Of a DNA stretch of 64,000 nucleotides, positions 5,306-50,836 are shown piece by piece (within the stretch, counting starts at the first letter, position 1; every line of letters starts with the position of its first letter). The translations under genes and the position numbers were made by a program. Below the pieces are notes generated by a model. That model was not told where the DNA came from, searched no databases, and worked only from the letters and a program-made list of their open reading frames with translations. The stretch spans positions 181,551 to 245,550 of the IMG/VR virus record IMGVR_UViG_3300032307_000369; one strand, given 5' to 3'.

Positions 5306-5382
5306 TATTTTCGCTATATATATTATCTACGCTGTAAATATACTCGACAGCCTTGCCTATACTATCAAAGGAGAATTTCGCA

Positions 5383-22800: not shown

Positions 22801-25800
22801 GGCGCATATTCTTCTGGTGGTGCAGTTAACGGAAAACAAAGCATTGCTCCATTCTTGAATACAACGACAAGATATGTAATTGAACCACGACCAGTTTTCT
22901 CAACAGGTTCAGGCGCAAGTGCAACTCCTGTTAGAACATTAGGTATTGATGCTTTTACTATTGTTAACGGCGGTAAAGGTTACACAGACGCACCTACACC
23001 AATCATTGCAGGCCCAGACACTGTATTAGACGCGGTTAATGCAACAGCGACAACTACTATTTCTGGACCAGTTGACACTGTAACTGTTTATTCTAGAGGT
23101 GGTGGCTATACTAGCGCACCTACTTTACAGTTTGTAGGTGGAGGCTTACCAACAGATTATGTTGATTTTGCGGCAGAAGCTGTTGTTACATTAGGTACTG
23201 CAATTTTTGTTCCTGGAACTTTAAGATTTTATGAAGTAACTGTTGCTGGAACACTTGGACTAACAGCGCCAACACACACTAGCGGAACTGCTACTAACGG
23301 AACTGCTACCGTAAGATACTTAGGTAGAAGAGCCAGTGCAACTGCTAACATGACCAATATTATTAAAACATTGGTATTGAATAGTGGCGGTGTTGGATAC
23401 ACTAGCACTCCTAGTGTGCAAGTAAGTGGGGCTAGTGGTTCAGGAGCAATTATTTCTGCAACCATCAGTCAGGTTATTAACCAAATTACACTTGATACAC
23501 CAGGTGCTGGATATAACACTGCTCCTACAGTCACTCTAATAGGCGGAGATCCGTTAGAGTTTGCAACAGCTCAAGCAGTACTAGATGCTACGTTAACTGG
23601 AGTTACTATCGTTGAAGGTGGTAACGGATATGTTCCTGCATCAACAACAGTTATTGTATCTGCTCCACCTGCTGGCGGTACAACTGCTACTGCTGAAGCA
23701 GTTATTGACTTTGGTGCATATATTCCAGGAATTACACCAGGAGCAGTTACCAGCATTAATATTCTTACTGCTGGTAGTGGTTATGCAACATCGCCTGCAA
23801 TAATTATTAATGGTGTTGGTAGCGGAGCTAGTGCTCAAACAATTATTACTGGTGAAATTGATAGAATTGAAGTGATCAACAGAGGTAGAGGATACGAATC
23901 TACTCCAGCAGTTAGTATTACTGGTGGCGGCGGATTTGGTGCAACAGCTACAGCTAGCAGAACAGGCTCAGTAAACACTATTACAATTATTGATGGTGGA
24001 GCTGGATTTACTGGCAATCCTACATTAGAATTTATTGGCGGTGGTCTACCCAACGGAAGTCCAAGTCATGCAACAGCCGTAGTTTCAGCAATTGACTCTG
24101 TAGTCTCAACTGTCACTCTTGTAGACGCTGGTGATAATTATACTTCAAACCCTGCAATTTCTGTAACAGGTGGTGGCGGAACAGGACCAACACTAAGAGC
24201 TAGAATTAATGGTCAGATTAGAACTATCACAGTAACTGATCCAGGTAGTGATTATAGTGCTGTAGTAGCACCAGTCATTGCGTTTAGTGGTGGTCGAGTG
24301 TACAAATCACCAGTTGCTGGTCTAAGATATTATACAAATGCCAGTGCATTAACCGCAATTGGTATTAGTCAGTTGACTCAAACACTTGCTGGTATTGCAA
24401 GAGCAACTGTTCTAGCTAAAAACGTTGTTGCTAACACAAACCCTGTGACCTCATATCAACAAGCAGTGACTCGTACTGCTGGCGGTGTAGGTTATACTCA
24501 GCCAACAAACATTGGTTTTGCAATTGACAGTTGGATGAACGGTGTATATTACACAATTGAAAACGGTCAAAATCATGTCAATGCCGCACAAGTGCTAAGA
24601 CTAAACAGACGTTTTTTAAGAACAGACGCAATGCAGTTCTTGGCAAACAACTATCCAGCTGTTTCAGATAGTACTTGGAGCAGAGATATTGGATTGATAA
24701 TTGATGCAATTGCAAAAGATATTGAAACACGCGGAGTAGTTAACTCTTCAACAGTTGCAATTAAACAGGCTTTCATAGATGCTAGAACTGCTGAACCTTT
24801 GGCAGTATTAGGCGTAATGGATTTCTTAAGAGATAGTATTGTTAGCATTGTTCAAAACATAGTATTAACTCCACAAGTTGATGGAACTACTACTTGGGAA
24901 GGACTATGGGTAGATGCTAAGAGCTATCAAACTAATGATGTGGTGTTCTTTGCAGGCAAGACTTATACTGCACAAAGCAATCATTTCTCTAACACATTGT
25001 TCAGTGTTGATTTGGCAGCTGGTCGCTGGGTTGAAAATATCAATGGTCAACAGACTTTAGATCTTCCATTAGAACCAGGCGCTATTACCGCTACTGAAAA
25101 TTTAGGAAATTACATTAAAGGGATATTACAATATCCACCAGCTAATGCATCTTGGACAGCGGCTGCAACATTGTTGTCAAGTAACCAATCTTATATCAAA
25201 GCAGAAGTAATTGCTTATATAAACAACACATATGAAGATTTTGTATACAATCAATCACTATGTGCTCGTGATATTGGATTTATTTTAGATGCTGTAGCAT
25301 ACGACTTATTAAATGCTCTAATTGCAGAAGCTACTGCTACTGCTAGCACAACTGGTGTTATATCAAAACTTACAGTTGATACTGGCGGTGAAGGATATAG
25401 TGGAGGGGTTGTAATTGCACTTGCAGGTGGTGGCGCTAGCGGAGCACCAACAGTTAATGCAACTGCAACTGCCATTAGAAATCAACTAACTGGTGCAATC
25501 ACTGGCTTTACAATGACTAATAAGGGTAAAGGATACGCTTCTTTACCAACTGTTACAATTACTCCTGATACAGGTAGTGGCGTAGTTGCTAGATGCCGAG
25601 TTGTTGGTGGTAACGTAAGTAAAGTGAATATTATTCATCCAGGTAGTGGCTATACTTCTGGACCGTTCCTAAGACTAGTTGATCCAAATAACAGTGGAGA
25701 TGCGGCATTCCAAGTGCGTGTTGCAAACGGCGTTCTAAAACAGCCTAAATTTACTGGTAGAGGAACAGGATTCTTAACTGCTGCCGTTGACATTAGTGGT

Positions 25801-28800
25801 GACGGATTTGCTGAAATTGCACAAACAGGTAGCTTTATATATGTTAAGAACTTAACAAATATTCCTACTCCAGGTGCAAACATACAGTTTGAAGATAATG
25901 ACACATTCTATAAACTAGTTACAGTTCGTGAAGTTATTGGACCACAAGGAACAATTAATGCTAGAGCAATTTTACTAGCTAACAAAGCGTTCGTACAGGC
26001 AGAAGTTATTAGCTATTTGAATAACTTCACATTTGACAGTGTAAAATGCTCACGAGATATTGGTTATATTATTGATGCTTTAGCTGATGATTCATTAACT
26101 GGATCTAATCAAAGACTATTAGCAGTAAGATGGCAGTATGCTAGAGGATTATATACTACATTTGACCGTCAAAGAATGCAAACTGCGTATGTATTAGAAT
26201 ACTTGCAGACAGAAATTAATCAATTATTCAACTATGCTGATAATGAAATATCTCAAACATTGAATGATTTGATTGAGTGGATTAAGAACGAAGAATATTA
26301 TAAAGATATTAAAGTTCCTTTAAATCCTCCTGCTGGATATGATGCAGAAAACGATGCTGGTTCTGCTGTACTAACTGCTAACCGAGAGTTTATTGCAGGA
26401 AATGCGCTAAGAAGATTTATCAACAATGCCCCTGCTGGCACATATACTTACAACTTAGAAATATGGTTGCAAGAATTTAGACAAGTAGTCGACAGTGTTG
26501 CATATGACTTAATGTACGCTGGAAATCAACAAGTGATCGAACACAGCTCAACTTTCTATAGTGGAGCAAACTTCATACTTGCTGGTTATACTGGTGACAC
26601 AAGTTTAGTAAAAGCAGAATTTGTAAACACGTTAACTTACATTAAGACATTGGCACAAGACATTGTACAGAATAATGTAATAGCTTCATTACAATCTGGA
26701 TATACAGTTAGCGGAACTGTTGCGGTGGTCAACGCATCAACAGGCGCTGTTACTGGTCCTGCACAAGACAGAACTCTAAGTGCTGGTGATACTGGTACCG
26801 CATTCCGTTCAGGCGGATTGTGTGATGACTTTATTTCAATTGTTAACAATAGTCCAACAACTATTGGCACAACTGTTACAGCTACCGGTACTTCCTTTGC
26901 AGGATTTGCTAGTGGCGATGTTGCTAAGAGAACAACGCTTCTAAATGCTAAACCAACATTGCGTACACAAGCAACAACTTGGATGACTGACAACTTTGTT
27001 GATTTTACGTATGATCAAGAAAAATGTTCTAGAGACGTTGGAATTATCGTTCAAGCAATTGCTGATGATATATATGGTGACGTAGCTAAATCTGTTGAAG
27101 CAGGTCAACGATATTATGCAGCCACTGCGGCTTTAGTGATTAGTGCGCAGAAGCCACAAACTATCGCAGCCATTAATTGGATTGGTGAAGTAGTACGCCG
27201 TGTTACAAATAACGTTACATGGGTAAGAACACAGAATCGTGTTTTCCAAGAACGATTCCCAAGTTTAACTGGCATGAGCGAAGCATTACCAGTACTACAA
27301 GAACGTGTAAACATTATTAAACGAATTGTTGAATATGGTGCATTCTTTGATCAAGTTAAACAAATTCTTTTAGATAACAAGTCTTATATTCAAGCTGAAG
27401 TAGTAAGTTTTGTTGACGCAACTTATGAAAACTTAAACTACAGTAGATCACTATGTTCTAGAGATGCAGGTTTAATTGTAGACGCATTGATATATGACGT
27501 ATATGGCGGATTGAGTAGAAGTCGTGAAGCTGGTCTACGTTATTATCAAAGCGCCAGTGCGTTGCTTGCCATTACTGGAGATCAATTGATTCCAACAACT
27601 ACTGCTATTAACTATCTAAGACAGTTAGCACAAGCAGTAATTTTAAATCAAAATCCTTCAGTTCAGTTCCAAGAAGCTGTTCTAAGAACAAGTATCAACA
27701 CAAACACTGGATCAATAGCGTTTGTAGCAGTTACTCCAGGATCTAATTATAGCCAAGGTACAAGTATCACAGTGAATACTGGTGGTAGTGGATCAATTGC
27801 TGGCGAAATTGATGCTGTGGTTGATGTTGCTACTGGTAGTATTATTGAAGCAACAGTTGTTAATGGTGGTTCAGGATTTAATAATGCACCAAGTTTAGCA
27901 ATAACAAAACCTGTTGCAGTGGTAAAAACTTATGCTAATATTTCAGGAACAACGTTGACTGTAAGTGACACTGTTGGAATATTTGTTGGCATGGAAGTTA
28001 CTGGTACAGGATTTACTAGCAATCAACGTGTAGTATCTATTAACAGTAATGGAATTGCAGTTGAACTTAGTGCAACGTCTGACGGTACTCCTGCAGGCAA
28101 TATCACATTCACTGATATTGGTAGTGGAGCAAGCGCAACCGCTATTTTAGGAGTTGCTTATAATACTGCACATGTATCAGAACTACTAGTTGATGAGAAG
28201 ATTGACGAAGCAACTGCGGCACTATTGGCAGTTATTGCTGGCGGTCCAAGTGTATTACCTGCTGGTAGATATGCGGCACGTCTACAAGTTAGTCCAGAGA
28301 TTCCAATTCAAATTAGTCCTCCACATGACACAAACACTGTGGTACGTAGTAAGTACTCACAAGTTCGTTTAACTGGTCACGACTTCTTGAATATTGGTAC
28401 TGGTAACAAGAACGATACCAACTACCCAGGCATTCCATTGAACGCTCCAGATCAAGCTAACGAAGTTGTTGAAGTTGGCGGTGGTCGTGTGTTCTACACC
28501 TCAACTGACCAAGACGGTAACTTTAGAGTTGGTGAACTATTCCGAGTTGAACAGTCAACTGGTATTGCTACATTGAATGCTGATGCGTTTAACTTGAGTG
28601 GTTTGAACGAACTATCACTTGGTGGTGTTACACTAGGCGGTTCAGGCGCTGTTATTCGTGAATTCTCAACAGACAGTACATTCTTTGCTAATAGTGACAA
28701 TATTGTTCCAACACAGAAAGCTATTAAGACTTACATTCAAAGTGCTTTAGGTTCTGGTGGTGGTAACATTGCTGTTAACGCGGTTATTGCTGGTGAGATT

Positions 28801-29979
28801 TTGATTACTGGTGATGAGATCACAACAACAAGCGGTGTACCAGTTAGATTTACTAATGCCCCAGGTCTACAATTTGAAGGCGGAGCAAACAGTACAAGTA
28901 CAACTACTGGTACAATTAGAGTTGGTACTGTATTAACTCCAGGTGGTATTGGTGTAACAGGTAACGTGTTTGTTGGCGGAACTGTTAACACACAAAGTTT
29001 AGTTGCTGCCGCCCTTGATAACACACCAATTGGTTCAAATACTCGTAGTACAGCATTGTTTACTACACTGGGTGCTAACGGTATTGTAACATTAACTGCT
29101 GGTTTGGCAGCGACAGGTAACACTACTGGAACATTGCGTGTTCAAGGTGGCGCTGGTATTACTGGTGATATTTTTGCAGGCGGTAATATTAGTACAACTG
29201 GTAGTTTAGAAGGCGCTAGTTTAGACAATACACCAATTGGTGCAACTGTTCGAAGCTCAGCATTGTTTACTACACTGGCTGCTAACGACAACGTACAGTT
29301 TACTAAAAATACAAACAGCACAAGTACTGGTACAGGAACACTAGTAGTAGTTGGTGGTGCAGGATTTAGTGGTAACATCACAGTTGGACAGCAACTAAGA
29401 CTTTCTGGATCAACAAGCGGTGTTACTGGATTCCAAGCTCCAGCTAGTGCAGGTAGCACAATTTATGTACTACCAGGTGCAGACGGTGCCGCAGGAACTA
29501 GTTTGGTTACTAACGGTAGTGGTGTTTTAAGTTGGGGTCAAGCAGGCGCAACAATTGCTGATGATACAACTACGAACAGCACGTTCTATCCAGCACTTTC
29601 AAACGTAACTACAGGTGGCGTTACAAGTTTAAGAGTGTCAAGTACTAAGTTTACATTTAATCCAAGCAGTGGTTTGCTAACTGTTACAGCACTAACAGAA
29701 AGTTCAAGTATTGCATTGAAACAAAATGTTAACCCAATTACTGATGCATTGGATAATGTGTTAAAACTAGTTGGTGTTACATACGATCGTAAAGATGGTA
29801 CACGTGACAACGAACCAGGATTGATTGCGGAAGATGTTAATAAAGTAATTCCAAACTTGGTAACTAAAGATGCACAAGGAAATCCAGATGGTATTCACTA
29901 TAGTAAGTTAACTGCTTATTTGGTTGAAGCAATTAAAGCACTAAAAGCAGAAATTGACGATTTGAAAAACGGTAAGTAA
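19834..29979 (+). CDS. Giant (3381 aa) multidomain tail-fibre / virion protein with C-terminal S74 intramolecular chaperone
   Basis: N-terminal W....Y..GD.V.YGG..Y repeats (CBM5/12-like); split beta-helix; more than 10 GxGY..xP beta repeats; helical CxRD repeats; TG.L.V.GG.G fibre repeats; C-terminal SSIALK...GLIAEDV...Y.KL...LVEAIK. Confidence 0.85.
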   Translation: MAEFKLGRLRFVWKGTWTATTAYVKDDIVRHGGKTYVAKTAHTSASNFYTDSDANRWELMADGIQWINTPWTASTTYKEGDLVRYGGKVYLCIDGHTANATQNGGFYTDLGINKWSLFVDGITAVGDWTVSTYYKLGDIAKYNGLTYICTEGHTSSSTTSSGLEADIGKWDVFAEGIKYRGAWSGTTRYILNDVVKFGASLYICALPHTSTSVFEDNRWFLFTSGFEFGGEWTNLTEYQIGDVVRYGGYLYVAVSRNTGQVPTGTSGNWTLLSMAYSTNGTYSNVATYKPGEVVRHGGNTFVANQEIGVGETPVSDVAKWDLLVSGVRWTGDWTATPTEVTYKINDLVKYVATTYVCVTEHDPTNLNRPDLDALGTNWIPFAEGADVNVMVRRGDLVTRNAIQNIRLPVGDAGQILKVQNNGLDLTWGNVGSITNIYYVSTEGLDGPTRGTSIDQPFRTIKYACDYVRTVAPAGFDSPAVINVKAGVYTEIFPISLPKFTSLVGDELRMSIVQPTPETSHLDKFRMRDSTTIRNFTFRGATGAPGGGFTDVNQYGTRRPTGAAWCCLDPGTGPNDESVWVGARSPYIQNVTTFGDNCVGQKIDGALHNGGNKSITSNDFTQVMSDSIGAWCTNQGRAELVSVFTYYSYIGYLCENGGVIRATNGNNSYGTFGSVSEGVDPTEISRTATVDNRRLNAIVDVTQTDGESVLYLEYLNAGENYTSATYGFTGSGVSASLSATADIAAGGVAEVRVLADGDSYVGVQNNAQLGDATYIRLGASDIQITNGYNGMRILLIDGTGTGQYAYISAFDGGSKDLTVNKETFTPLTVTAVASTGNLFTTADTSTLTLNMPINFQGTVLGNVVADTIYYVKTIPGGTTFTVSASISGGVAGTTFNPGTATGTMVLHAVGWDVFADNIVTNIGGATQANPVVITTSTPHGLKSTWNARISGVTGMTQLNGNTYFVDVLSNTTFALYTDFGLTSSVNGTAYGAYSSGGAVNGKQSIAPFLNTTTRYVIEPRPVFSTGSGASATPVRTLGIDAFTIVNGGKGYTDAPTPIIAGPDTVLDAVNATATTTISGPVDTVTVYSRGGGYTSAPTLQFVGGGLPTDYVDFAAEAVVTLGTAIFVPGTLRFYEVTVAGTLGLTAPTHTSGTATNGTATVRYLGRRASATANMTNIIKTLVLNSGGVGYTSTPSVQVSGASGSGAIISATISQVINQITLDTPGAGYNTAPTVTLIGGDPLEFATAQAVLDATLTGVTIVEGGNGYVPASTTVIVSAPPAGGTTATAEAVIDFGAYIPGITPGAVTSINILTAGSGYATSPAIIINGVGSGASAQTIITGEIDRIEVINRGRGYESTPAVSITGGGGFGATATASRTGSVNTITIIDGGAGFTGNPTLEFIGGGLPNGSPSHATAVVSAIDSVVSTVTLVDAGDNYTSNPAISVTGGGGTGPTLRARINGQIRTITVTDPGSDYSAVVAPVIAFSGGRVYKSPVAGLRYYTNASALTAIGISQLTQTLAGIARATVLAKNVVANTNPVTSYQQAVTRTAGGVGYTQPTNIGFAIDSWMNGVYYTIENGQNHVNAAQVLRLNRRFLRTDAMQFLANNYPAVSDSTWSRDIGLIIDAIAKDIETRGVVNSSTVAIKQAFIDARTAEPLAVLGVMDFLRDSIVSIVQNIVLTPQVDGTTTWEGLWVDAKSYQTNDVVFFAGKTYTAQSNHFSNTLFSVDLAAGRWVENINGQQTLDLPLEPGAITATENLGNYIKGILQYPPANASWTAAATLLSSNQSYIKAEVIAYINNTYEDFVYNQSLCARDIGFILDAVAYDLLNALIAEATATASTTGVISKLTVDTGGEGYSGGVVIALAGGGASGAPTVNATATAIRNQLTGAITGFTMTNKGKGYASLPTVTITPDTGSGVVARCRVVGGNVSKVNIIHPGSGYTSGPFLRLVDPNNSGDAAFQVRVANGVLKQPKFTGRGTGFLTAAVDISGDGFAEIAQTGSFIYVKNLTNIPTPGANIQFEDNDTFYKLVTVREVIGPQGTINARAILLANKAFVQAEVISYLNNFTFDSVKCSRDIGYIIDALADDSLTGSNQRLLAVRWQYARGLYTTFDRQRMQTAYVLEYLQTEINQLFNYADNEISQTLNDLIEWIKNEEYYKDIKVPLNPPAGYDAENDAGSAVLTANREFIAGNALRRFINNAPAGTYTYNLEIWLQEFRQVVDSVAYDLMYAGNQQVIEHSSTFYSGANFILAGYTGDTSLVKAEFVNTLTYIKTLAQDIVQNNVIASLQSGYTVSGTVAVVNASTGAVTGPAQDRTLSAGDTGTAFRSGGLCDDFISIVNNSPTTIGTTVTATGTSFAGFASGDVAKRTTLLNAKPTLRTQATTWMTDNFVDFTYDQEKCSRDVGIIVQAIADDIYGDVAKSVEAGQRYYAATAALVISAQKPQTIAAINWIGEVVRRVTNNVTWVRTQNRVFQERFPSLTGMSEALPVLQERVNIIKRIVEYGAFFDQVKQILLDNKSYIQAEVVSFVDATYENLNYSRSLCSRDAGLIVDALIYDVYGGLSRSREAGLRYYQSASALLAITGDQLIPTTTAINYLRQLAQAVILNQNPSVQFQEAVLRTSINTNTGSIAFVAVTPGSNYSQGTSITVNTGGSGSIAGEIDAVVDVATGSIIEATVVNGGSGFNNAPSLAITKPVAVVKTYANISGTTLTVSDTVGIFVGMEVTGTGFTSNQRVVSINSNGIAVELSATSDGTPAGNITFTDIGSGASATAILGVAYNTAHVSELLVDEKIDEATAALLAVIAGGPSVLPAGRYAARLQVSPEIPIQISPPHDTNTVVRSKYSQVRLTGHDFLNIGTGNKNDTNYPGIPLNAPDQANEVVEVGGGRVFYTSTDQDGNFRVGELFRVEQSTGIATLNADAFNLSGLNELSLGGVTLGGSGAVIREFSTDSTFFANSDNIVPTQKAIKTYIQSALGSGGGNIAVNAVIAGEILITGDEITTTSGVPVRFTNAPGLQFEGGANSTSTTTGTIRVGTVLTPGGIGVTGNVFVGGTVNTQSLVAAALDNTPIGSNTRSTALFTTLGANGIVTLTAGLAATGNTTGTLRVQGGAGITGDIFAGGNISTTGSLEGASLDNTPIGATVRSSALFTTLAANDNVQFTKNTNSTSTGTGTLVVVGGAGFSGNITVGQQLRLSGSTSGVTGFQAPASAGSTIYVLPGADGAAGTSLVTNGSGVLSWGQAGATIADDTTTNSTFYPALSNVTTGGVTSLRVSSTKFTFNPSSGLLTVTALTESSSIALKQNVNPITDALDNVLKLVGVTYDRKDGTRDNEPGLIAEDVNKVIPNLVTKDAQGNPDGIHYSKLTAYLVEAIKALKAEIDDLKNGK

Positions 29980-29986
29980 TAATACT

Positions 29987-31039
29987 ATGGCGATATTAAA
30001 AAATACTTCTTTTAGAGATTCCAACAGCGTACTCACAATACCTTCTGGAACTACTGCACAACGTCCATTGCGCCCGCCTAACGGCGCAATGAGATTTAAC
30101 ACGTCATTTGGTGTCACAGAGATTTATATGAATAATGGTTGGCACGATGCATCTAACGGTTCTAGACTGATTGATGCTTGGCCAACCAGTATTGATAGCG
30201 GTGGCATGTTTGTTGAACTTTGGGGTGGTGGCGGTGGGGGCGGAAGACCAGGCGGCTGGAGTCAAGGATCAGAAGGAGGAGCTGGCGGATATTCTTGGGG
30301 TTGGATAAACACTGAAGTAGTTCCAACTGGATCAACGCTTATATTGCAAGTAGCTGGCGGTGGCGCAGTTGGAGGTACTTCTAGTGCTTTCCCAGGCGGC
30401 GGAACAGTTATTGGCGGCGGCGATAATAGATATGGATCGGCTGGCGGTGGATATTCTGGTTTATTTCTAACCACGGTCACACAGGCTAATGCAATTTTAA
30501 TCGCAGGCGGTGGTGGTGGTGGCGGCAGTAGTCGAGCAAATACAGGTAATATTGGTGGCGCAGGCGGTGGCATTGAAGGCAGAGATGGGCACAGTCCATA
30601 TGATTCAAAAGAAGAATGGCGTGGTCGTGGCGGCACACAGACATTTGCTGGTGAAGCAAGTGGTCGTGATAGATACGGTATAACTTGTAACAATTCAAGT
30701 GATCAACAAGGCGCACTGCAAGGCGGTCGATGTACAGTTGGCAGTGGCTACGGTGGTGGCGGAGGCGGCGGTTACTGGGGTGGATCAGGAGGCGGCTATT
30801 CAGAATCAAACACCATGGCAGGTGGTGGCGGCGGTAGCGGATTTGTACACCCATCAAGAATTGTAGGGGGCGGCACGCTAGCAGGCGCTTGGAGAACTCC
30901 ACCAAATCCACCTAGCGGTAGTTTAGGATACGGCGGAACAAACAGTAGTGCTGGAAATAACGGATTTGCAAGGATAACTAGAAATGGCGTAGTAACCACA
31001 TACAGTTTTACTGGCAGTAATGTGACGATCACCTTATAA
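29987..31039 (+). CDS. Glycine-rich (polyglycine-II-type) adhesin-like virion protein
   Basis: PSGTTAQRP..GAMRFNT connector followed by many GGGGG runs (ELWGGGGGGG, GGGGGYWGG). Confidence 0.7.
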   Translation: MAILKNTSFRDSNSVLTIPSGTTAQRPLRPPNGAMRFNTSFGVTEIYMNNGWHDASNGSRLIDAWPTSIDSGGMFVELWGGGGGGGRPGGWSQGSEGGAGGYSWGWINTEVVPTGSTLILQVAGGGAVGGTSSAFPGGGTVIGGGDNRYGSAGGGYSGLFLTTVTQANAILIAGGGGGGGSSRANTGNIGGAGGGIEGRDGHSPYDSKEEWRGRGGTQTFAGEASGRDRYGITCNNSSDQQGALQGGRCTVGSGYGGGGGGGYWGGSGGGYSESNTMAGGGGGSGFVHPSRIVGGGTLAGAWRTPPNPPSGSLGYGGTNSSAGNNGFARITRNGVVTTYSFTGSNVTITL

Positions 31040-31052
31040 TGGAATAATAAGA

Positions 31053-32969
31053 ATGGCAATTTTAAGAAATACAACTTTTAGTGAAACTGGTGGATTTTTA
31101 TCCTTACCCGCTGGTACAACAGCCCAGCGTCCTGGACTTTATACTTCAGCTACAATTGTACAGTTAACTACAGTGGGCACTAGTACATGGACGGTTCCAG
31201 CAGGGGTTACTACTATTGAAGTATTATTAGTTGCTGGAGGTGGTGGTGGCGGTTTCCAAGTTGGCGGTGGTGGTGGTGGTGGCGGAGTAGTATACCGTCC
31301 ATTTTATCCAGTAACTCCTGGCGCAAATATCACGTATACTATTGGTGGTGGCGGAACTGGCGCAGCCAATAGTGGTGTCGCTGGCACAAACGGACAAGAT
31401 ACTACGTTTGGTTCTGGCGGCGATCAAGTGGTAGCTAAAGGCGGTGGCGCCGGAGCAAATCATAGTACTAGCGTTGGAGGTTATGACGGGATTGGTCAAT
31501 CAGGCGGGTCAGGTGGTGGCGGCGCTGGAGATAGTTCTAGTAGAAGTCAACGTGGCGGATATCCAGTAGACGGTCAAGGTTACCCAGGCGGAAGAGGTCG
31601 AGGTGGTAATCATCCAGGATTTAGTGGGAATGCTTGGGCAGGCGGTGGTGGTGGTGGCGCTGGTGGCCCAGGCCAAGATTCAAACGTAAATGGTCAAGGT
31701 GGTAATGGTGGTCCAGGCATTACAACAAACATAACATGGAACGGCACTGGCGCACAAACACTAACAAATTACGGCGGTGGCGGTGGTGGATGTAGCGGCC
31801 CAGGTTCATCTGGCCACCGTGCTGGTGGTGGTATTGGTGGTGGCGGTTCTGGTGCTGGAGATGGCGACAGTGGAGCTCCTAAAAACGGTGTTGCTAACAC
31901 AGGTGGCGGTGGTGGTGGCGTTCGCGACACTTCAGGTGCTGCCGGAAATGGCGGAAGTGGTATTATCATAATTCGTTATTTTGCTGATAGACAGCCCTTA
32001 ATGTCTGGATCTATTAGATTAAACACTGACACTGGTAGAGTTGAACAGTTTCAAAGCAATGGTGTTTGGGGTGAAGTTGCTATTCCATTTTTAACAAGAC
32101 AAATTATTACCACTGCATACATGTTAGGTGGTTACAAAGATGCGGCAGCTTGGAATAACGTTAATAGAACTAGTGTGGCTACTGATGTAACTATTAACAT
32201 TGGTGATAACTCTATTGAAAGAAGTTTTAATTACCAAGGTGGTGCGTGTAGCACTAACCTAGCCTACGTTTTTGGTGCAGGTAACGGCCATGCTATTAAC
32301 AGTAACTATGTTATAGCGTTCAACATGCGAACAGAACAAGCGTATAACCCAGGCAGCGGCATGAGCAGAACTATGGCAGGTAGTAGATGGACGTTTGGTA
32401 CAATGTTCAAAGAAACTTATTTGGCATGGAGTGCTGGCGGTGGCGATGCAAGATTAGAAGAATATAACATGACCACTCAAACTCTAGTGGGAACAATTAC
32501 AAGTGTTAGACAAGGTGGAAATACATGGGCCATGAGCCATGAAAATTTTGGATACATTTATTGGGCAAATGATCAAGATAGATTTGATTTTGCCACCCGA
32601 ACATTGCAGTCTGCGGGTATTCGAAATGGCATATCCAACCACGATCAACAAAAATCTATACAAAGTAAATACATGTGGGCATGGGCAGGAAATGAAGGAA
32701 GTTATAACGGCGGAAATAGTCTAAGAAGAACTAACATGCAAACAGACACTACTATGGGAACATATGGTAAACCAGTTGGTAATAGTGGTGAAGAAAATCT
32801 TACTATGGGACAAGACTGGCAATACATGATAGGCATGTATAACGGCGCACAAAATAATATTAGTTGGAAATGGTATTACTACACTGAAACTGGTGCACAA
32901 AACTCAAGCACACTTGAACCAAAAGGTAAGGGCGGAGCGAGTTCTGGTACATGTAGCTGGAGAGATTAA
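31053..32969 (+). CDS. Gly-rich plus beta-propeller-like adhesin
   Basis: WTVPAGVTTIEVLLVAGGGGGG ... GGSGIIIIRY Gly-rich domain, then AYMLGG/AYVFGA-type kelch-like blades; ends CSWRD. Confidence 0.7.
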   Translation: MAILRNTTFSETGGFLSLPAGTTAQRPGLYTSATIVQLTTVGTSTWTVPAGVTTIEVLLVAGGGGGGFQVGGGGGGGGVVYRPFYPVTPGANITYTIGGGGTGAANSGVAGTNGQDTTFGSGGDQVVAKGGGAGANHSTSVGGYDGIGQSGGSGGGGAGDSSSRSQRGGYPVDGQGYPGGRGRGGNHPGFSGNAWAGGGGGGAGGPGQDSNVNGQGGNGGPGITTNITWNGTGAQTLTNYGGGGGGCSGPGSSGHRAGGGIGGGGSGAGDGDSGAPKNGVANTGGGGGGVRDTSGAAGNGGSGIIIIRYFADRQPLMSGSIRLNTDTGRVEQFQSNGVWGEVAIPFLTRQIITTAYMLGGYKDAAAWNNVNRTSVATDVTINIGDNSIERSFNYQGGACSTNLAYVFGAGNGHAINSNYVIAFNMRTEQAYNPGSGMSRTMAGSRWTFGTMFKETYLAWSAGGGDARLEEYNMTTQTLVGTITSVRQGGNTWAMSHENFGYIYWANDQDRFDFATRTLQSAGIRNGISNHDQQKSIQSKYMWAWAGNEGSYNGGNSLRRTNMQTDTTMGTYGKPVGNSGEENLTMGQDWQYMIGMYNGAQNNISWKWYYYTETGAQNSSTLEPKGKGGASSGTCSWRD

Positions 32970-34060: not shown

Positions 34061-34936
34061 ATGACAGATAGAATTAAACAATACAACTCTCAGAGATTTC
34101 AAAGCACAATCAATACAGATGTAAGCATGATTGATGATGCTGGTAAAAAGTTGATTGAAAGAGCAATGAACAAAGAATGGACTAATCCAAAGTACAAATT
34201 GCGTTGGTTTGTGGGACAGCAACAAATTACTCCATTTTCTAAATATCGTCAATGGCTCTTAGAATTAAAAAGCAAAGAAGAGTCTTTAGAAAATATGGAA
34301 TATGAAATTGCAAAATTGCAAGTTGAATATGACAGATATAAAAGAATCAAAGACAACTCTACTGACGATTTAGATAAACGCCTTGCAGACATTGAAATGT
34401 GGAAAACTGATAGAAGCATTTATATGAGCAAGCGACGAATCCAAGATTGGTATTTGGAAAGACAGCACCTAATTGATCTAATTGAAGAATTTATGGCTTC
34501 AGATGAAGCTAAGTTGCCAGATGGATCTGGAAGAACTTATGCTGATGTTTTGGACACTGAAGAAGAAGATGTATATGAAGCGCAGTATTGGACAAACAGA
34601 CTAGCAAAACAGGCAGCTTGTGACATGTTGTTTTATGGTCGTATTGGCACTGGTAATATGGACGCCATACTAAGTATGAGTCCAGAACAGCAAGCAGAAA
34701 CACTTGCATTAACTGTGAACTTCAGTACTCAATTACAATCTTATCAAACAAGATTACAAAATGAAGCTACACAAATGTTACAGATGCAACAAGCAAGTGA
34801 TAATAAAGATTTGACATTTCCAACGTCATCACACTTGATTAATGATAGCAGTGCGCAAAATATTCAAAAAGCAGATGTATCAAACGATGCCGAGGACTTA
34901 TTAAATGTATATAGTATTCGAAACACTGGCGAGTAA
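34061..34936 (+). CDS. Hypothetical coiled-coil protein (possible fibre/adhesin assembly factor)
   Basis: TAAATA at 34028-34033 and GAGGG Shine-Dalgarno; C-terminal YWTNRLAKQAACD...GRIGTGNMDAI block. Confidence 0.6.
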   Translation: MTDRIKQYNSQRFQSTINTDVSMIDDAGKKLIERAMNKEWTNPKYKLRWFVGQQQITPFSKYRQWLLELKSKEESLENMEYEIAKLQVEYDRYKRIKDNSTDDLDKRLADIEMWKTDRSIYMSKRRIQDWYLERQHLIDLIEEFMASDEAKLPDGSGRTYADVLDTEEEDVYEAQYWTNRLAKQAACDMLFYGRIGTGNMDAILSMSPEQQAETLALTVNFSTQLQSYQTRLQNEATQMLQMQQASDNKDLTFPTSSHLINDSSAQNIQKADVSNDAEDLLNVYSIRNTGE

Positions 34937-35447
34937 TGATCCAAGATTAGATCCAAAGATGAATATCTTTGGCAAATACTGGCATTATAGTATTGCTTTT
35001 ATTGCTCCTGAGCATGAGGAAAGCGTCTATTTAAAATGGATGCCTCATGAAGTAATTTCAGAAAAGGTAGCTAAGTCTGACAAGTTAGCATCATCAATAG
35101 ATGGAGAAATTGCCTTATTGGTTAAAAACTTTGGTACGTATGAAGAGATTATCTCTCCTACTAGCAAAGGGGATAATAACTATAGAAAACAACTATACTA
35201 CTTGACTCCAGAAGACGATAAAAATTGCACAGATTTGTTAAAAGCTATTGCAAAAATACATATTTTAACCAAGTTATCAGAAGATAATGAGCCAAATGTT
35301 AAAGAAAGATTGCTGACAATTGTAAACCAGCTAACTAACTTAAATGATGCGCAAGTGTTCTTCCATAATTATTTTAATGTACAATTAACAGCGTATACAC
35401 ACAAGTTAGAAAAAACTGCTGAATTTGTTGCAAATTTTAATCCTTGA
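34905..35447 (+). CDS. Hypothetical protein
   Basis: 180-aa ORF with GAGGA Shine-Dalgarno, overlapping the end of the previous gene. Confidence 0.6.
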   Translation: MYIVFETLASNDPRLDPKMNIFGKYWHYSIAFIAPEHEESVYLKWMPHEVISEKVAKSDKLASSIDGEIALLVKNFGTYEEIISPTSKGDNNYRKQLYYLTPEDDKNCTDLLKAIAKIHILTKLSEDNEPNVKERLLTIVNQLTNLNDAQVFFHNYFNVQLTAYTHKLEKTAEFVANFNP

Positions 35448-35454: not shown

Positions 35455-35504
35455 TTTACATTTTACTAGAAAGGTGCTATAATAAGTATATAGTACCTTT
35501 TTTT
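35455..35504 (+). promoter_or_regulatory. Sigma70-type promoter overlapping a terminator-like hairpin
   Basis: TTTACA (35455-35460), 17-nt spacer, TATAAT (35478-35483), with an extended TG. Arms 35470-35481 and 35489-35500 pair (one G-U) and are followed by TTTT. Confidence 0.6.
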
Positions 35505-37196
35505 ATGGCTCTTATGAAGAAAAAAATTTTTAGCGTTCCACTTAATCCAAAACTTTCTCCAGATCAATATCTAGAATTTTATAACTTTCTAGCGGAGTAT
35601 AAAGATTATATTCGAGATGTTTATTTCACTTCTCGAATTAAACCATTTATGCAAGATGCAATGGGAGACGTGTTTGTCATACAAGAAGATTATCAATATG
35701 CTATTGATGCGGCTTTGTATATTCAAAACACTTTGGGTATTCCTGTTAGTGCAACATTTAACAATATTAGTGTCCCACCAACACAGATTAACCTAGATAC
35801 CTTTATATCTAATTTCAAACCATTGTATGATAAGGGCATAAGAAATGCCACTATCCCACATACGCACTGGATGGCTACTGGTCAGATCAAGGCAGCATTT
35901 CCTGAACTGTATGTAAAAAATACAATTTTAAGAGAAGTGCATACCGCACAAGAAGTTGTTAATCTAGCCAAAGCAGGATTTGATTATGTTAATTTAGATA
36001 GAGATCTGATGAGAGATCGTGATGCTTTATTAAAGATTAAAAAGGCTAAAGAATATATTAAAGAAACAATGGGGAAAGATATTGCGATCAGTCTGCTATC
36101 TAATGAAGGTTGCTTAGGTGGCTGTTCCATGATGGTGGAACATTTTGAGTTCAATAACAATAGAATAGGCGCAAGCCCGCAATACTTTAATGATCCAATC
36201 AGTAGAGTTAGTTGTCCTAAATGGGACGTATTGGATCCAGCAGTGCATCTTAAAACAGCCAACTTTCCTCCTTGGAGAGCTGACTGGGTAGAATTTGTAG
36301 AGGAGTTAGGCATTGACAGTTTTAAAATGCACGGCAGAGAAGCAGTGTCAAGACTCTACGAGACAATGGAAATTATTAGAAGATTTGCTCGAGAAGAAGA
36401 AATTTTAATTGACGGGTTTGAAAAGTATTTAGAAGAAACAAATTTAGTAGATAAGCCAATTAACATATGGCGACAAAAAATTAAGAATTGCAAATTTGAA
36501 TGTTGGGAATGCCAATATTGTGATAAAATTTACGATAAAAAGGCAGCTGACATTAAGTATTCAGAACTTGTACAACACGTAGTTGAGTGTATAGCGGATA
36601 GTGGAATTCCAACAGTTAGTACAAATGTTCCAGGACTTACAAGTATTCGAGTTCAATCATTGTTAAATGCAATTGCATCAGGCGTTGATACGTATTTAGA
36701 AGTTGGATCAGGTGTTGGTGCAACAATGTCTGCGGTGTTAAAAAATAATCCTATACATGCTATTGCAGTTGATAACTGGCAGCAGAATATACAACCATTA
36801 ACTGATAACATAGCACAGCTACCTGAAAATACTGTAGAAAACTTTACTGAAAATATTAAAAAATATAGTGGCGCATCAAGAATTGATGTATATAACGGGG
36901 ATCTTTTTAGTATAGATACTAGTACATTTGAAAAACCAATCAAAATGTTTTTCTATGATGGCCCGCATGATTTAGCCAGCACTAAACGTGCAGTTCAACA
37001 TTATGCCAGTTGTTTAGATAACGAGGCAATTTTAATTTTTGATGATGCAAATTGGGAAGGCGTTGTTGAAGGCGCTAGACAAGGGATCAACGCTGTTGGA
37101 GGTCACGTGACTTATGAAAAATTAATTTTAAATAGTGTTGAAAATCCAAGAGAGTGGTGGAACGGCTTGTATATATTAGTAATGAGGAAAAGATGA
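35505..37196 (+). CDS. Peptidase U32-like Fe-S protein fused to a class I SAM methyltransferase (Methyltransf_24-like)
   Basis: U32-like NEGCLGGC...H, SCPKW and FKMHGRE; Cys cluster CKFECWECQYC; C-terminal YLEVGSGVG, FFYDGPH and IFDDANW. Confidence 0.7.
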   Translation: MALMKKKIFSVPLNPKLSPDQYLEFYNFLAEYKDYIRDVYFTSRIKPFMQDAMGDVFVIQEDYQYAIDAALYIQNTLGIPVSATFNNISVPPTQINLDTFISNFKPLYDKGIRNATIPHTHWMATGQIKAAFPELYVKNTILREVHTAQEVVNLAKAGFDYVNLDRDLMRDRDALLKIKKAKEYIKETMGKDIAISLLSNEGCLGGCSMMVEHFEFNNNRIGASPQYFNDPISRVSCPKWDVLDPAVHLKTANFPPWRADWVEFVEELGIDSFKMHGREAVSRLYETMEIIRRFAREEEILIDGFEKYLEETNLVDKPINIWRQKIKNCKFECWECQYCDKIYDKKAADIKYSELVQHVVECIADSGIPTVSTNVPGLTSIRVQSLLNAIASGVDTYLEVGSGVGATMSAVLKNNPIHAIAVDNWQQNIQPLTDNIAQLPENTVENFTENIKKYSGASRIDVYNGDLFSIDTSTFEKPIKMFFYDGPHDLASTKRAVQHYASCLDNEAILIFDDANWEGVVEGARQGINAVGGHVTYEKLILNSVENPREWWNGLYILVMRKR

Positions 37197-38704
37197 TTAG
37201 TAAGGTAAAAAATATAGTAATTTTTGGCGGAGGTACAAGCGGTTGGCTTACTGCGGCCTACATGGTAAACAATTTAAAAATACCAACTAAGATTACATTA
37301 ATAGAAGATACTTCTCTTGGACCAATTGGTGTTGGAGAAGGTACTCAACCATTGACTGCACAATTTTTACATCAGTGCGGTATTCCACCAAAAATGTGGA
37401 TGAAACCAAGCCAAGCAAGTTTTAAATTTGGTGTTGAATTGGTTGGTTGGAATGACGAGCCATATTTTGTAGATAACGACACTATCAATAATGCAGTTAT
37501 ATCAGAAGACTTTTTTACTAGTGATTACTTTTTAAATAAGGACCCTAAAGAATTTAGAGATTGGCATCCTGCTTATCAATTGGCAAAAGAAAACATTTGT
37601 CCTAAAATTGAAGGAAGTATGGATGTAAATTTTGGTTCAGGAGAGGCTGGATATGGCGCAGTACATTTTAATGCTTACGAAATTATAAAAACAATAAAAG
37701 ATATCATACTTGATAAAATTACATATATTGATACTAAAATTGAAAATATTGAAAAAGACATATATGGAATTACTAAGCTAGTTGATGACAAGAATAACTC
37801 TTACACTGCTGATTTGTTTATAGATTGCAGTGGGTTTAAATCACTGTTACTTGAAAAAACATTAGGATCTCCATTCACTTCATACACAGATTATTTGCCG
37901 TGTGACAAGGCAGTAGTACTTCCAACACAATATACTGATCCTGAAAAAGAATGTTTTCCTTACACTCGTGCAACAACCATGACGTCAGGTTGGAGATTTA
38001 CGATTCCAATTTTTACAAGGGTTGGTAATGGTTACATTTATAGCAGTAAATTTATCAGTAAAGAAGATGCAGAAAAAGAGTTAAGAGAAAGCGTTGGCGA
38101 ATTTGATGCAACTGCAAGACACTTAGATATGAAATGTGGAACACATAAAGAAATTGCTGTTAAAAATGTCTGTGCAGTGGGATTAAGTGCAGGGTTTGTG
38201 GAACCATTGGAAGCAACTGGCATCACTTTTACTACTGCTGTGGTAAGATCAATTACTGACTTATTAAACATGAGTGGAAATGTTTGGAATCAACAAGTAA
38301 AAGACTACATTAACAGAGGATTTCATGAAATGACTACTGAAATTGTAGCATTTGTTTGGGCCCACTACCACTTTGCTACAAGACGAGACACAGATTTTTG
38401 GAAAAATATTGGTGAACAACGCTTAGAAAATTTGCCAGAAGATGTACAGTATGTATTAAGCAATTTTTACCCAATGCCAAGTAAGTATCTTTATTTTAGT
38501 CCTGGCTCAATGTTTAACGCTGTGCAATGGTTTAGTGTTATTCATGCTGGTAAGGGATATGCTAACGTAAAAAATACACTGTCAGAAAAACAAGAACTTT
38601 ACGGAAAATATTTTAAAGAAGTACATGAATCAAGAGTTGGCATGGCAAAGAATACTTTTCCAAATCAATATCAGTATCTAAAGGATTGGTATGCAAAAGT
38701 GTAA
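37193..38704 (+). CDS. Flavin-dependent (tryptophan halogenase family) halogenase
   Basis: GGGTSG FAD motif, GVGEGT, ASFKFG (catalytic Lys position), FIDCSGF, WRFTIP and GFVEPLEATG; start at 37193 via ATGA overlap. Confidence 0.9.
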   Translation: MISKVKNIVIFGGGTSGWLTAAYMVNNLKIPTKITLIEDTSLGPIGVGEGTQPLTAQFLHQCGIPPKMWMKPSQASFKFGVELVGWNDEPYFVDNDTINNAVISEDFFTSDYFLNKDPKEFRDWHPAYQLAKENICPKIEGSMDVNFGSGEAGYGAVHFNAYEIIKTIKDIILDKITYIDTKIENIEKDIYGITKLVDDKNNSYTADLFIDCSGFKSLLLEKTLGSPFTSYTDYLPCDKAVVLPTQYTDPEKECFPYTRATTMTSGWRFTIPIFTRVGNGYIYSSKFISKEDAEKELRESVGEFDATARHLDMKCGTHKEIAVKNVCAVGLSAGFVEPLEATGITFTTAVVRSITDLLNMSGNVWNQQVKDYINRGFHEMTTEIVAFVWAHYHFATRRDTDFWKNIGEQRLENLPEDVQYVLSNFYPMPSKYLYFSPGSMFNAVQWFSVIHAGKGYANVKNTLSEKQELYGKYFKEVHESRVGMAKNTFPNQYQYLKDWYAKV

Positions 38705-39269
38705 ACTTTTTAGAGCTGATCTGTTTTTAGAATCAAATGTTGGTACAGATGAGCAATACAATGATTTACTAAAACAAATTAGATTCGCTCAGAGTATGAA
38801 TAGTAATCCTGCTCCTCACAGTAATGAGAACTGTTGGAGAACTGAAACACAGTATCAAAATATTGGATGGTTACTGCAAGGTTTAAGAAAGTTGTTAGAT
38901 GAATTTATTCTTGAATATAAACATGAATTAGACTATAAGAATTTAGATTACAATAAAATTTCATATTTTTATTGGACAAACATCAATGCACCACATAGTA
39001 AAAATGCTAGACACGCACATGTCAAAAGTCATTTTTCAGCGGTGTACTACTTGCAATCAGAAAATACTGGAGCCCTTAGACTAATTAATCCAGCAAACGG
39101 ACTGTCTGAATGTAACCCAGGCGCTCCGTATATTTCAGACGTTGTTTATCCACCAAAGGATCGAGATTTAGTAATGTGGCCTGCCTGGGTTCCACATGAA
39201 GTTGATCCAAATTATTCAAATAAAGAAAGAATAAACTTAACATTTGATATTACAATAGGTCCAAAATGA
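38691..39269 (+). CDS. Putative 2OG-Fe(II) oxygenase (TIGR02466-like)
   Basis: W.NIN....N..HAH...FSAVYY ... PAWVPHEV.PN....RINLTF. Confidence 0.8.
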   Translation: MQKCKLFRADLFLESNVGTDEQYNDLLKQIRFAQSMNSNPAPHSNENCWRTETQYQNIGWLLQGLRKLLDEFILEYKHELDYKNLDYNKISYFYWTNINAPHSKNARHAHVKSHFSAVYYLQSENTGALRLINPANGLSECNPGAPYISDVVYPPKDRDLVMWPAWVPHEVDPNYSNKERINLTFDITIGPK

Positions 39270-40005: not shown

Positions 40006-40404
40006 ATGCTACACGAAATCAATGACGGAGAATTCGCAACATATATTGTTGTTGAGAGGAAAGTTAAAGACGAATATACTGCAAGAAAAGTACAAAAAGA
40101 TAGACGTAAATTGCAAATATGGTTAGATGCATTATTAAGTGATCGCCATGTTATTATCTTCTATAAAGACGGTATTGAAGAAAAAATGTTTGTGGGTAGT
40201 AAAAAAGAAATGTTTGGTGAACTACCAACAACTCCTATGAATATTGACATTGTTAATAACAAAGTAAAATTACAAAGCTATTACTGCACTTGTTTTGAAG
40301 TTCCCAATAGAACTCCTGTTGCTGTACATGTTGATTCTGTGACTAAATTTATTGTTAAGCAAGAAGGATTATCAGAACTCAGTTCAAGGATTAGATTTAT
40401 ATGA
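40006..40404 (+). CDS. Hypothetical protein (weak resemblance to phage WYL/Sm-like proteins)
   Basis: IIFYKDG..KM ... HVDSV pattern only; the ORF is coupled to its neighbours. Confidence 0.4.
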   Translation: MLHEINDGEFATYIVVERKVKDEYTARKVQKDRRKLQIWLDALLSDRHVIIFYKDGIEEKMFVGSKKEMFGELPTTPMNIDIVNNKVKLQSYYCTCFEVPNRTPVAVHVDSVTKFIVKQEGLSELSSRIRFI

Positions 40405-40985
40405 TTGAAAACGATTTTATTGGGGTATACGACCAAGCGTTGACCAAGGAAGAGTGTGATGAAATCATACGCTACTTTGAAGAGATGAAAAAATTAAACT
40501 TAGTATTTGACCGCCAAAGTTTAAAAGACGGACATGCCCACGAAAAACAAGATGAAACTTGTTTTCCTATGGAACTAGATGAGTTCTATGTTGACAAAAC
40601 TCATCCAACTCTTAAATTATTTTTTGATAAATTTTGGCCATGCTACGAAGAATATGTAAAAAAATACAGTGTGTTAGCAACATCGGTCAAACACGGATCA
40701 CTTGGTATTAGAGTTCAAAAAACCCCAATTGGTGGCGGGTACCATCCTTGGCATTACGAAAATGATGGAAGATTGTCATCATCACGTGTCATAGCATTTA
40801 TGCTATACCTTAACACTGTTACTATTGGTGGTGAGACAGAATTTTTATATCAGCACAAACGAGTCAGTCCAACGCAAGGTAGAGTAGTAATTTGGCCCGC
40901 AGGATTTACGCATACTCATAGAGGAAACCCTCCATTAAGCGGTGAAAAATATATTGTCACTGGTTGGTTAGAGTGGATGGCTTAA
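40401..40985 (+). CDS. 2OG-Fe(II) oxygenase, prolyl-4-hydroxylase-like
   Basis: GGYHPWHYE, R....MLYLN.V..GGETEF, WPAGFTHTHRG.PP and KYIVTGW. Confidence 0.9.
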   Translation: MIENDFIGVYDQALTKEECDEIIRYFEEMKKLNLVFDRQSLKDGHAHEKQDETCFPMELDEFYVDKTHPTLKLFFDKFWPCYEEYVKKYSVLATSVKHGSLGIRVQKTPIGGGYHPWHYENDGRLSSSRVIAFMLYLNTVTIGGETEFLYQHKRVSPTQGRVVIWPAGFTHTHRGNPPLSGEKYIVTGWLEWMA

Positions 40986-50401: not shown

Positions 50402-50836
50402 TCAAATGATGTTGATTAAGTCAAATACTGTTTCTAGTTTGGTTCTAATAATCTTATTAGAAAAGCTACTTTTTAGCCCTTGATGCAATGGTTTGGGCGA
50501 ATGATCCATCTCTGACCAGCACCAACCTTTGTGCTCGCCGTTGAGCTTGGGGATAAATTCGTCTTCTATAATCATTAGATATGTGTGATAAAAGAACTTG
50601 TCGTCCTTACTCACAAATAGCTCTAAGGGAATTGTCTTTTTTACATCAGGCATTACCCCAATTTCTTCAACAATTTCTCTCTTCAAAGCTTCAAAATTAT
50701 TGGCGTCTGTATCTTCTTGTTTCCCGCCCACAATGCCCCAAGTACCGCTAGTCCTGCCGCCATTGCGAAGCAAGAATAAAAATCTCTTGGTTGATTTGGC
50801 ATAGAAAAGTGCTCCACTACAGACTATATCGTTCAT
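50402..50836 (-). CDS. Nudix hydrolase
   Basis: Nudix box GGKQE....EALKREIVEEIG; start at 50836 overlaps the gp15 stop (ATGA). Confidence 0.85.
   Translation of the reverse strand: MNDIVCSGALFYAKSTKRFLFLLRNGGRTSGTWGIVGGKQEDTDANNFEALKREIVEEIGVMPDVKKTIPLELFVSKDDKFFYHTYLMIIEDEFIPKLNGEHKGWCWSEMDHSPKPLHQGLKSSFSNKIIRTKLETVFDLINII

Follow-up and report, generated by a model that had tools for sequence, protein, structure and literature searches.

A U32-like barrel fused to an O-methyltransferase-like domain in T4-like phages: a candidate enzyme for O2-independent hydroxylation and O-methylation

We analysed a 64,000-nucleotide stretch of viral DNA (hereafter the window; positions 181,551 to 245,550 of IMG/VR record IMGVR_UViG_3300032307_000369), and in it one open reading frame (ORF) whose product joins an N-terminal barrel resembling the U32 family to a C-terminal S-adenosylmethionine (SAM)-dependent methyltransferase domain. 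Because a U32-type barrel with invariant cysteines is here fused to an O-methyltransferase-like domain, the most economical reading is a two-domain tailoring enzyme, in which the first half would hydroxylate an aromatic ring without O2 and the second would O-methylate the product, assisted by a helical partner protein; we give this reading about an even chance of being correct. The gene, and all the elements that a preliminary description of this DNA had named in it, were found at their places (Table 1). The view taken there, that U32 proteins are iron-sulfur (Fe-S) hydroxylases and not proteases, agrees with the current literature (PMC6747719, PMC10990095). As to its central claim, that one polypeptide hydroxylates and then O-methylates, the barrel, the invariant cysteines and the methyltransferase-like domain speak for it, while the Fe-S cluster and the hydroxylase activity are what we infer from them.

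Three independent lines (structure search, ESM Atlas neighbours and profile-profile comparison with a negative control) agree on the N-terminal domain, and support its placement as a U32-type TIM barrel and a deeply divergent member of that superfamily: (i) The modelled domain has the (beta/alpha)8 barrel fold of the U32 type. (ii) In the ESM Atlas, a genuine U32 cluster aligns over query residues 7-370, the helical extension that follows the barrel included. (iii) Compared by hhalign with a profile built from 14 real U32 proteins, taken from E. coli and four other genomes, the family aligned with an E value of 2e-5 and a probability of 77%, with 262 columns in register (query 5-308 against U32 5-290), whereas the structural runner-up, MTHFR, used as the negative control in the same procedure, gave an E value of 0.28 and a probability of 0.2%. 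The preliminary description turned on this domain being a U32 barrel, and both fold and remote homology came out that way.

This placement has its limits. The hhalign probability of 77% is itself moderate and not decisive. The Pfam model Peptidase_U32 (PF01136) matched neither the whole protein nor its N-terminal half even at E<=10, matched nowhere in the phage record, and was found in only 1 of 71 relatives (E 0.033). The U32 signature E-x-F-x2-G-[SA]-x-C-x6-C, whose Glu and two Cys (E162, C170 and C177 in TrhP) are essential in TrhP and RlhA (PMC6599085), is absent from the family, which carries SLLxNEGC-x3-C in its place, with no Glu at position -8. With the Pfam model and the signature motif both failing, the predicted protein is not a canonical U32. 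Profile searches with each half, one of the checks that the preliminary description had put forward, answered fully for the C-terminal half, which matched Methyltransf_24, and in part for the N-terminal half, which had no Pfam U32 match but did align with the U32 profile. Sequence-only searches of the PDB with the N-terminal domain returned weak matches to de novo TIM barrels only. Membership of the radical SAM superfamily was considered and rejected: PF04055 matched neither the protein, nor its N-terminal half, nor the relatives, and the CX3CX2C-like string sits after the barrel (residues 329-339), not after strand 1. In the ESM Atlas, a cluster of 622-residue Acidobacteriota proteins with Radical_SAM and Fer4_12 domains superimposes on the N-domain model with a TM score of 0.68 over 305 residues, and represents either a radical-SAM/U32-like fusion or mere barrel similarity.

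In an alignment of 71 sequences that reaches down to 23% identity (mean column identity 23%), the sole invariant columns are seven Cys (C203, C207, C237, C329, C333, C336 and C339), and for this reason metal binding is strongly indicated. C203 and C207 follow barrel strand 7 in the string NEGCLGGC, C237 lies in SCPKW, and E201, E212 and H213 are near-invariant beside them; this first group lies in the loop region that supplies the cluster ligands in U32 proteins, but with a different spacing. The second group corresponds to the extra CKFECWECQYC cluster of the preliminary description, which is present as that exact string. On strand 8, K274, G277 and R278 are conserved to 90% or more, and hhalign sets their motif on the KIEGR of U32 proteins. 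Hence, U32-type Cys and K..GR motifs are both present, as had been claimed, but the Cys spacing is not the published one and the canonical signature is missing: CX6CX15CX3/4C (PMC6747719) is replaced in the family by CX3CX29C plus CX3CX2CX2C. Cluster ligands of U32 proteins can shift far along the sequence, as seen with UbiU (CX6CX16CX38C) and UbiV (CXnCX12CX3C) (PMC6747719), and hhalign is of low confidence in the region where individual Cys are matched to U32 ligands. Two very divergent short relatives from Campylobacterales loci keep C333, C336 and C339 and lack C203, C207, C237 and C329, and on that basis we tentatively suggest a U32-type four-Cys site (203, 207, 237 and 329) and a separate CX2CX2C site. 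The C-terminal Cys group may alternatively be a zinc site.

In the C-terminal half, Pfam Methyltransf_24 matches residues 398-514 above its cut-off (E 1.7e-8, 35.7 bits against 26.3), so the methyltransferase of the preliminary description is confirmed, and the AlphaFold2 model of the domain has a pLDDT (predicted local distance difference test) of 89.3. Its top structural neighbours are nearly all cation-dependent O-methyltransferases, TrmR among them, with sugar O-methyltransferases (MeT1, MycF, SpnH and NovP) tied with catechol O-methyltransferases as the best. In addition to the motifs listed in Table 1, D423 is conserved, and HMMER aligns D485, D513, D514 and N516 with the motifs of 3ntv, the Asn being one position off relative to D-N. 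No NCBIfam model for TrmR or O-methyltransferases came near its curated cut-off, either with the full protein or with five C-terminal domains. By resemblance, then, sequence and model support a cation-dependent, COMT/TylF-like class I SAM O-methyltransferase.

Table 1. Features of the fusion gene and its surroundings (positions in the window; residues are those of the fusion protein).
Feature	Position	Strand	Remarks
GC353-like helical protein (phrog_1409, T4-GC353), 291 amino acids	34061..34936	+	co-occurring partner gene
180-amino-acid ORF between partner and fusion gene	34905..35447	+	ORF of 152-194 amino acids at the same position in relatives
Sigma-70-type promoter-like site	35455..35483	+	TTTACA, 17 nt, TATAAT, upstream TG; 57-nt gap before fusion gene
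Fusion ORF, U32-like domain and O-methyltransferase-like domain	35505..37196	+	563 amino acids; phrog_1458; cyanophage cluster T4-GC354
(beta/alpha)8 TIM barrel, U32-like, residues ~4-300	35514..36404	+	
First Cys group, C203-x3-C207-x29-C237	36111..36215	+	after strand 7; candidate [4Fe-4S] site
K274-M-H-G277-R278-E279	36324..36341	+	on strand 8; counterpart of U32 KIEGR
Helical extension after barrel, residues 301-365	36405..36599	+	bears second Cys group; model secondary structure
Second Cys group, C329-x3-C333-x2-C336-x2-C339 (CKFECWECQYC)	36489..36521	+	residues 329-339
Class I SAM-dependent methyltransferase domain, COMT/TylF-like, residues 366-563	36600..37193	+	Pfam, AlphaFold2 model, structural neighbours
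SAM-binding motif I, E399-V-G-S-G-V-G405	36699..36719	+	E399, G401 and G405 nearly invariant
Acidic motifs FYDG (D485) and DDAN (D513, D514, N516)	36957..37052	+	nearly invariant; candidate metal/catalytic set
Flavin-dependent halogenase-like gene	37193..38704	+	Pfam Trp_halogenase E 3.4e-90
2-oxoglutarate (2OG)-Fe(II) oxygenase (2OG-FeII_Oxy_5)	38691..39269	+	
Second 2OG-Fe(II) oxygenase (phrog_61)	40401..40985	+	

The mechanism that we propose combines these elements. One U32-type [4Fe-4S] cluster would be held by the three Cys of the first group (C203, C207 and C237) and, tentatively, by C329 as fourth ligand, and C333, C336 and C339 would form a second metal centre. The N-terminal domain would hydroxylate an aromatic or heteroaromatic ring independently of O2, the oxygen donor probably being prephenate, in line with proposals for other U32 proteins. 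Methylation of the new hydroxyl by the fused C-terminal domain would then give a net conversion of C-H into C-OCH3, and the enzyme would work with an obligate helical GC353-like partner encoded just upstream. Since hydroxylation in vitro is still to be demonstrated for any U32 protein (PMC10990095), we infer every one of these chemical steps.

The logic itself has a direct precedent. In B. subtilis, trmR-trhP2-trhP1 form one operon; TrhP (YegQ) or TrhP1-TrhP2 (YrrO-YrrN) together with TrmR (YrrM) make up the bacterial tRNA pathway from ho5U34 to mo5U34, likewise pairing a U32 Fe-S barrel with a COMT-like O-methyltransferase (PMC6599085). In spite of this similarity, the phage protein differs from this and from the other known systems in several respects: (i) It is phage-encoded and fuses both activities in one chain, lacks the PF01136 match, the E-x7-C-x6-C motif and the Peptidase_U32_C domain of TrhP, and has an additional CX3CX2CX2C and an obligate helical partner. 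(ii) UbiU and UbiV, which act with UbiT, share the superfamily fold, and each holds a [4Fe-4S] cluster on four Cys; they are O2-independent, prephenate-dependent ubiquinone hydroxylases with an aromatic-ring substrate and a non-catalytic accessory protein (PMC6747719, PMC10990095). They form, however, a heterodimer of paralogs, whereas the phage gene is single-copy in its record, its partner is helical and not of the SCP2 type, and its surroundings show no quinone-pathway context. (iii) Mk0906, the U32 protein of Methanopyrus kandleri (PDB 5d88), is 9-10% identical to the phage protein and lacks the methyltransferase; the phage protein adds an 80-residue Cys-rich helical extension. (iv) The cation-dependent O-methyltransferases (COMT, CCoAOMT-like, TomG, SafC, MycF/TylF and MeT1) are 10-18% identical to the C-terminal domain, which fits no single one of their subfamilies and, unlike them, is fused to a U32-like domain. 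(v) The TrhO-TrmR fusions of Phytophthora and Phaeodactylum also join a hydroxylase to the O-methyltransferase of the next step (PMC6599085), but TrhO is an O2-dependent enzyme of the rhodanese type and not a U32. Taken together, the fold, the Fe-S idea and the coupling of hydroxylase and O-methyltransferase were already known, while the novelty lies in the divergent Cys architecture, in the fusion, in the distribution among phages and in the obligate partner.

The fusion protein belongs over its entire length to phrog_1458 (E 3.5e-171), for which PHROGs gives no function, and its N-terminal half alone matches phrog_36869. By tblastn, 126 of 50,697 phage records carry the gene: they belong to T4-like phages of Synechococcus and Prochlorococcus, with full-length identities of 42-46%, and to three Ralstonia jumbo phages, which have the N-terminal domain only. 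Cultured Prochlorococcus and Synechococcus phages included, the annotation was hypothetical protein in all 40 records among the matches listed (126 matching). Metagenomic relatives numbered more than 1,700 in a word search, the best names among them being 'predicted O-methyltransferase YrrM' and 'class I SAM-dependent methyltransferase', whereas exhaustive HMMER searching with the N-terminal domain recovered only 262 clusters (at 50% identity) among 1.8 billion representatives, many of them stand-alone N-domains of 330-440 residues. The N-domain family is therefore compact and distinct, with the methyltransferase fusion as one of its branches. In Prochlorococcus phage P-SSM3 the homolog (NC_021559.1, 114189-115493) covers query residues 2-429 only, and its methyltransferase domain may be truncated, encoded separately or missing altogether. 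In a megablast search the region matched no phage genome, and the stretch was present in none of the RNA runs searched. Our literature search found no paper tying U32 to cyanophages, viruses or DNA modification.

The partner gene shows the same distribution. Its phage records likewise number exactly 126 and divide among organisms just as those of the U32-like gene do (Synechococcus 77, Cyanophage 38, Prochlorococcus 8 and Ralstonia 3), and, judging from these counts and breakdowns, both genes appear to reside in the same 126 genomes. They adjoin one another in nearly all listed records, and a sensitive hidden Markov model detected the partner next to the U32-like gene at each of the phage loci examined as well as in one Leptospirales chromosome. 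A 2010 study of 16 cyanophage genomes places the clusters GC353 and GC354 in the same 5 of them; its main text contains no discussion of either. Searches with Pfam, NCBIfam, PDB profiles and two ESM Atlas look-ups gave nothing usable for the GC353-like protein, its PHROGs match being to a family of unknown function, and a complex prediction of the partner with the N-terminal domain scored 0.00, a value that weighs neither for nor against binding. We also considered that the partner might be fused to the enzyme in some relatives, and rejected this: the N-terminal extensions of 200-230 residues in three of them (P0137, P0229 and P0253) are not GC353-like (hhalign probability <1%), and neither in these nor in seven further extended relatives did the extensions contain a Pfam domain. 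The 180-residue ORF between the two genes had no family match in Pfam or PHROGs. The fusion ORF opens with an ATG, its homologs start at the equivalent of M4 (35514), and the true start may be either of the two ATG codons.

Hints to a substrate come from cellular relatives, whose loci we found by scanning genome contigs with a profile of a 22-sequence alignment. Assemblies of Campylobacterota, Syntrophaceae/Smithella, Leptospirales, Bacillota, Victivallales and Pirellulaceae contain N-domains that stand alone, and so does a complete Halarcobacter chromosome. In three metagenome-assembled genomes of Campylobacterales, radical-SAM/SPASM enzymes adjoin the U32-like gene (operons at L011 8-3013, L013 5988-10156 and L020 1722-5679), and these operons look like peptide-maturation clusters; those of L013 and L020 also hold a short divergent protein that keeps only the C-terminal Cys-rich motif. 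An ATP-binding cassette (ABC) exporter with a C39 domain and HlyD are encoded near the gene in three further loci (L012, L018 and L024), in L012 with a TolC-like protein too: there (147-5921) the U32-like gene heads an operon with the TolC-like protein, the C39-peptidase ABC transporter and HlyD, an arrangement of type I secretion or bacteriocin export. Because radical-SAM/SPASM enzymes and exporters are typically encoded where peptides are matured, we slightly favour as substrate an aromatic residue in a peptide or protein, or else a small aromatic molecule, over the pyrimidine C5 of tRNA or DNA.

Other contexts are more varied. In Syntrophaceae/Smithella (L014-L017) the gene is followed by a conserved 259-residue protein outside known families and then by genes for GNAT, a TauE/SafE exporter, a PAPS-reductase-domain protein, possibly of the CysD type, and CysN/CysC-type proteins, which is a context of sulfur activation. 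Two loci (L011 and L014) contain a second full copy of the U32-like gene. Polytopic membrane proteins of the DUF401 type directly follow it both in Ralstonia phage RP31 (ORF135; L002 6034-7074) and in Leptospirales (L021 8972-10174); they are homologous (36% identity, E 1e-58), so that GC353-like, U32-like and DUF401-type genes form a block common to phage and bacterium, the Leptospirales copy having one extra ORF. A conserved UbiV-like paralog downstream was considered and rejected, the Halarcobacter downstream ORF being unrelated to the N-terminal domain, to RP31 ORF135 and to the Leptospirales neighbour.

Four other explanations have to be weighed. In the first, which we consider rather unlikely, the N-terminal domain retains the U32 scaffold in another role (redox or electron transfer, dehydratase- or radical-type Fe-S chemistry at a site-differentiated cluster on three Cys, or zinc-stabilised binding), and the methyltransferase modifies a hydroxyl that its substrate already has, such as one on a sugar of a virion or cell-surface glycan, in the manner of MycF, TylF, SpnH and MeT1. 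This would account for the missing U32 catalytic signature and for a canonical loop region with only three Cys and the conserved E201, E212 and H213 nearby; it is also consistent with the sugar enzymes that tie as best neighbours of the C-terminal domain, with the position of the gene in the structural and fibre region of T4-like phages and with the many N-domains that stand without a fused methyltransferase. Yet enzyme fusions usually join consecutive steps, the pairing of U32 with an O-methyltransferase follows a logic that is biochemically proven (PMC6599085), and no glycosyltransferase or sugar-nucleotide genes were seen in the cassette with Pfam and PHROGs.

About as likely as this, and hence also improbable, is a phage version of TrhP plus TrmR, which would hydroxylate U34 or another pyrimidine C5 of tRNA or rRNA, yield 5-methoxyuridine and tune decoding for the phage. 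The phage record encodes 19 tRNAs, including Thr(UGU), Pro(UGG) and three Leu; all these genes lie outside the window, at record positions 376-3414 and 50781-53988, with 16 clustered at the start of the record. A near-consensus sigma-70-type promoter directly upstream of the fusion gene has also been counted in favour of this explanation; with 11 of 12 matches it is the best of the region, but such sites are no commoner there than in shuffled sequence, and it is a lead only. Against a tRNA target, the protein lacks the C-terminal domain and the signature residues of TrhP, and the bacterial gene contexts give no pointer to translation.

The remaining two explanations are minor. T4-like phages commonly hypermodify pyrimidine C5, and a C5-hydroxy or C5-methoxy pyrimidine in phage DNA could shield it against host nucleases. 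Pyrimidine C5 is moreover a U32 target (PMC6599085), and Ralstonia phage RP31 encodes a dCTP deaminase ~4 kb away from its U32-like gene. Nucleotide-metabolism genes are, however, not consistently adjacent; the sporadic occurrence of the gene, in 5 of 16 closely related cyanophages, would be unusual for a genome-wide DNA modification; and the likeness to the 'DNA methyltransferase' phrog_2675 is weak (E 6.6e-11 against 3.5e-171 to phrog_1458) and reflects the generic methyltransferase fold only. We therefore hold DNA modification to be quite improbable. Proteolysis by a collagenase-like 'peptidase U32', with the glycine-rich structural proteins encoded nearby as its substrates, is suggested by the historical family name and by the glycine-rich proteins encoded just upstream, but is hardly credible, since U32 proteins are Fe-S hydroxylation factors in the current literature (PMC6747719, PMC10990095) and neither the methyltransferase fusion nor the invariant Cys clusters fit it.

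Downstream of the fusion gene lie a flavin-dependent halogenase-like gene and two 2OG-Fe(II) oxygenase genes. Among the PDB relatives of the halogenase are the tryptophan 5-halogenase PyrH (1e-64) and the cyanophage iodinase VirX1 (6qgm). Its sequence retains GxGxxG, the Lys in SFKFG and the Glu in EPLE, but has GWRFTIP where WxWxIP is expected. The likely ATG of the halogenase gene overlaps the TGA of the fusion gene as ATGA, the same four-nucleotide overlap occurs in a relative (L042), and this suggests translational coupling of the two genes; the GTG start that the ORF finder chose at 37154 is probably too far upstream. Between the oxygenase genes are ORFs of 245 (phrog_7084) and 132 residues, and two related contigs (L043 and L044) show the same oxygenase order with a second, oppositely oriented halogenase inserted. 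From the adjacency to O2-dependent oxygenases the preliminary description had argued for modification under both oxic and anoxic conditions. We find this argument weak, because the halogenase and the oxygenases are kept beside the fusion gene only in the clade of the window (66-68% identity), and because the halogenase, present in 64 cultured-phage records, occurs mostly in records other than the 126 with the U32-like gene.

The window as a whole corresponds to the structural module of a T4-like myovirus, where portal, major head protein, baseplate wedge, tail fibres and sheath are encoded, and makes up the last 64 kb of a 245,550-bp record that CheckV estimates as ~70% complete. A copy of a neighbouring gene, 97% identical, lies on a contig of 349,857 bp, suggesting a jumbo genome of ~350 kb. 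DNA of the phage was detected in one subsurface and one unlabelled metagenome, and as small shares of sampled words in freshwater metagenomes. A 3,381-residue ORF and, after it, two genes for glycine-rich proteins (Pfam domains ALK_LTK_GRD and Gly_rich_2) occupy 19834-32969 on the plus strand; G+C reaches 0.51 at 30001-32000 against ~0.38 elsewhere, glycine codons being the probable cause. The tail sheath gene (55449-59120, plus strand) encodes 1,223 residues, against the 915 positions of the PHROG profile that it matches end to end, which implies large insertions.

U32 proteins have only recently been recognised as O2-independent hydroxylation factors, whose chemistry nobody has so far reconstituted in vitro (PMC10990095); in the literature searched, no U32 protein has been described from a virus. 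Our reading of the fusion protein assigns T4-GC353 and T4-GC354, a pair of genes common in cyanophages, a function that can be tested. It extends the U32 superfamily beyond its Pfam model, to a different Cys arrangement and a new accessory protein, and places an O2-independent Fe-S enzyme, unexpectedly, in phages of oxygen-producing hosts. In such a fusion, methylation would trap the product of the U32 step, and this could ease the detection of an activity that has been elusive. It is a doubtful prospect, though one worth naming, that we are dealing with a widespread, so far overlooked phage system of a divergent U32-type Fe-S enzyme and its obligate helical partner, with the O-methyltransferase fused on in aquatic T4-like phages, that installs methoxy groups without O2 on a new class of U32 substrate, be it DNA or tRNA pyrimidines or aromatic side chains of virion or secreted proteins. 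If so, the protein would be the first O2-independent hydroxylase from a virus and would offer a soluble model, in a single chain, for U32 chemistry; were the substrate a pyrimidine, its product would be a new 5-methoxy hypermodification of phage DNA or tRNA.

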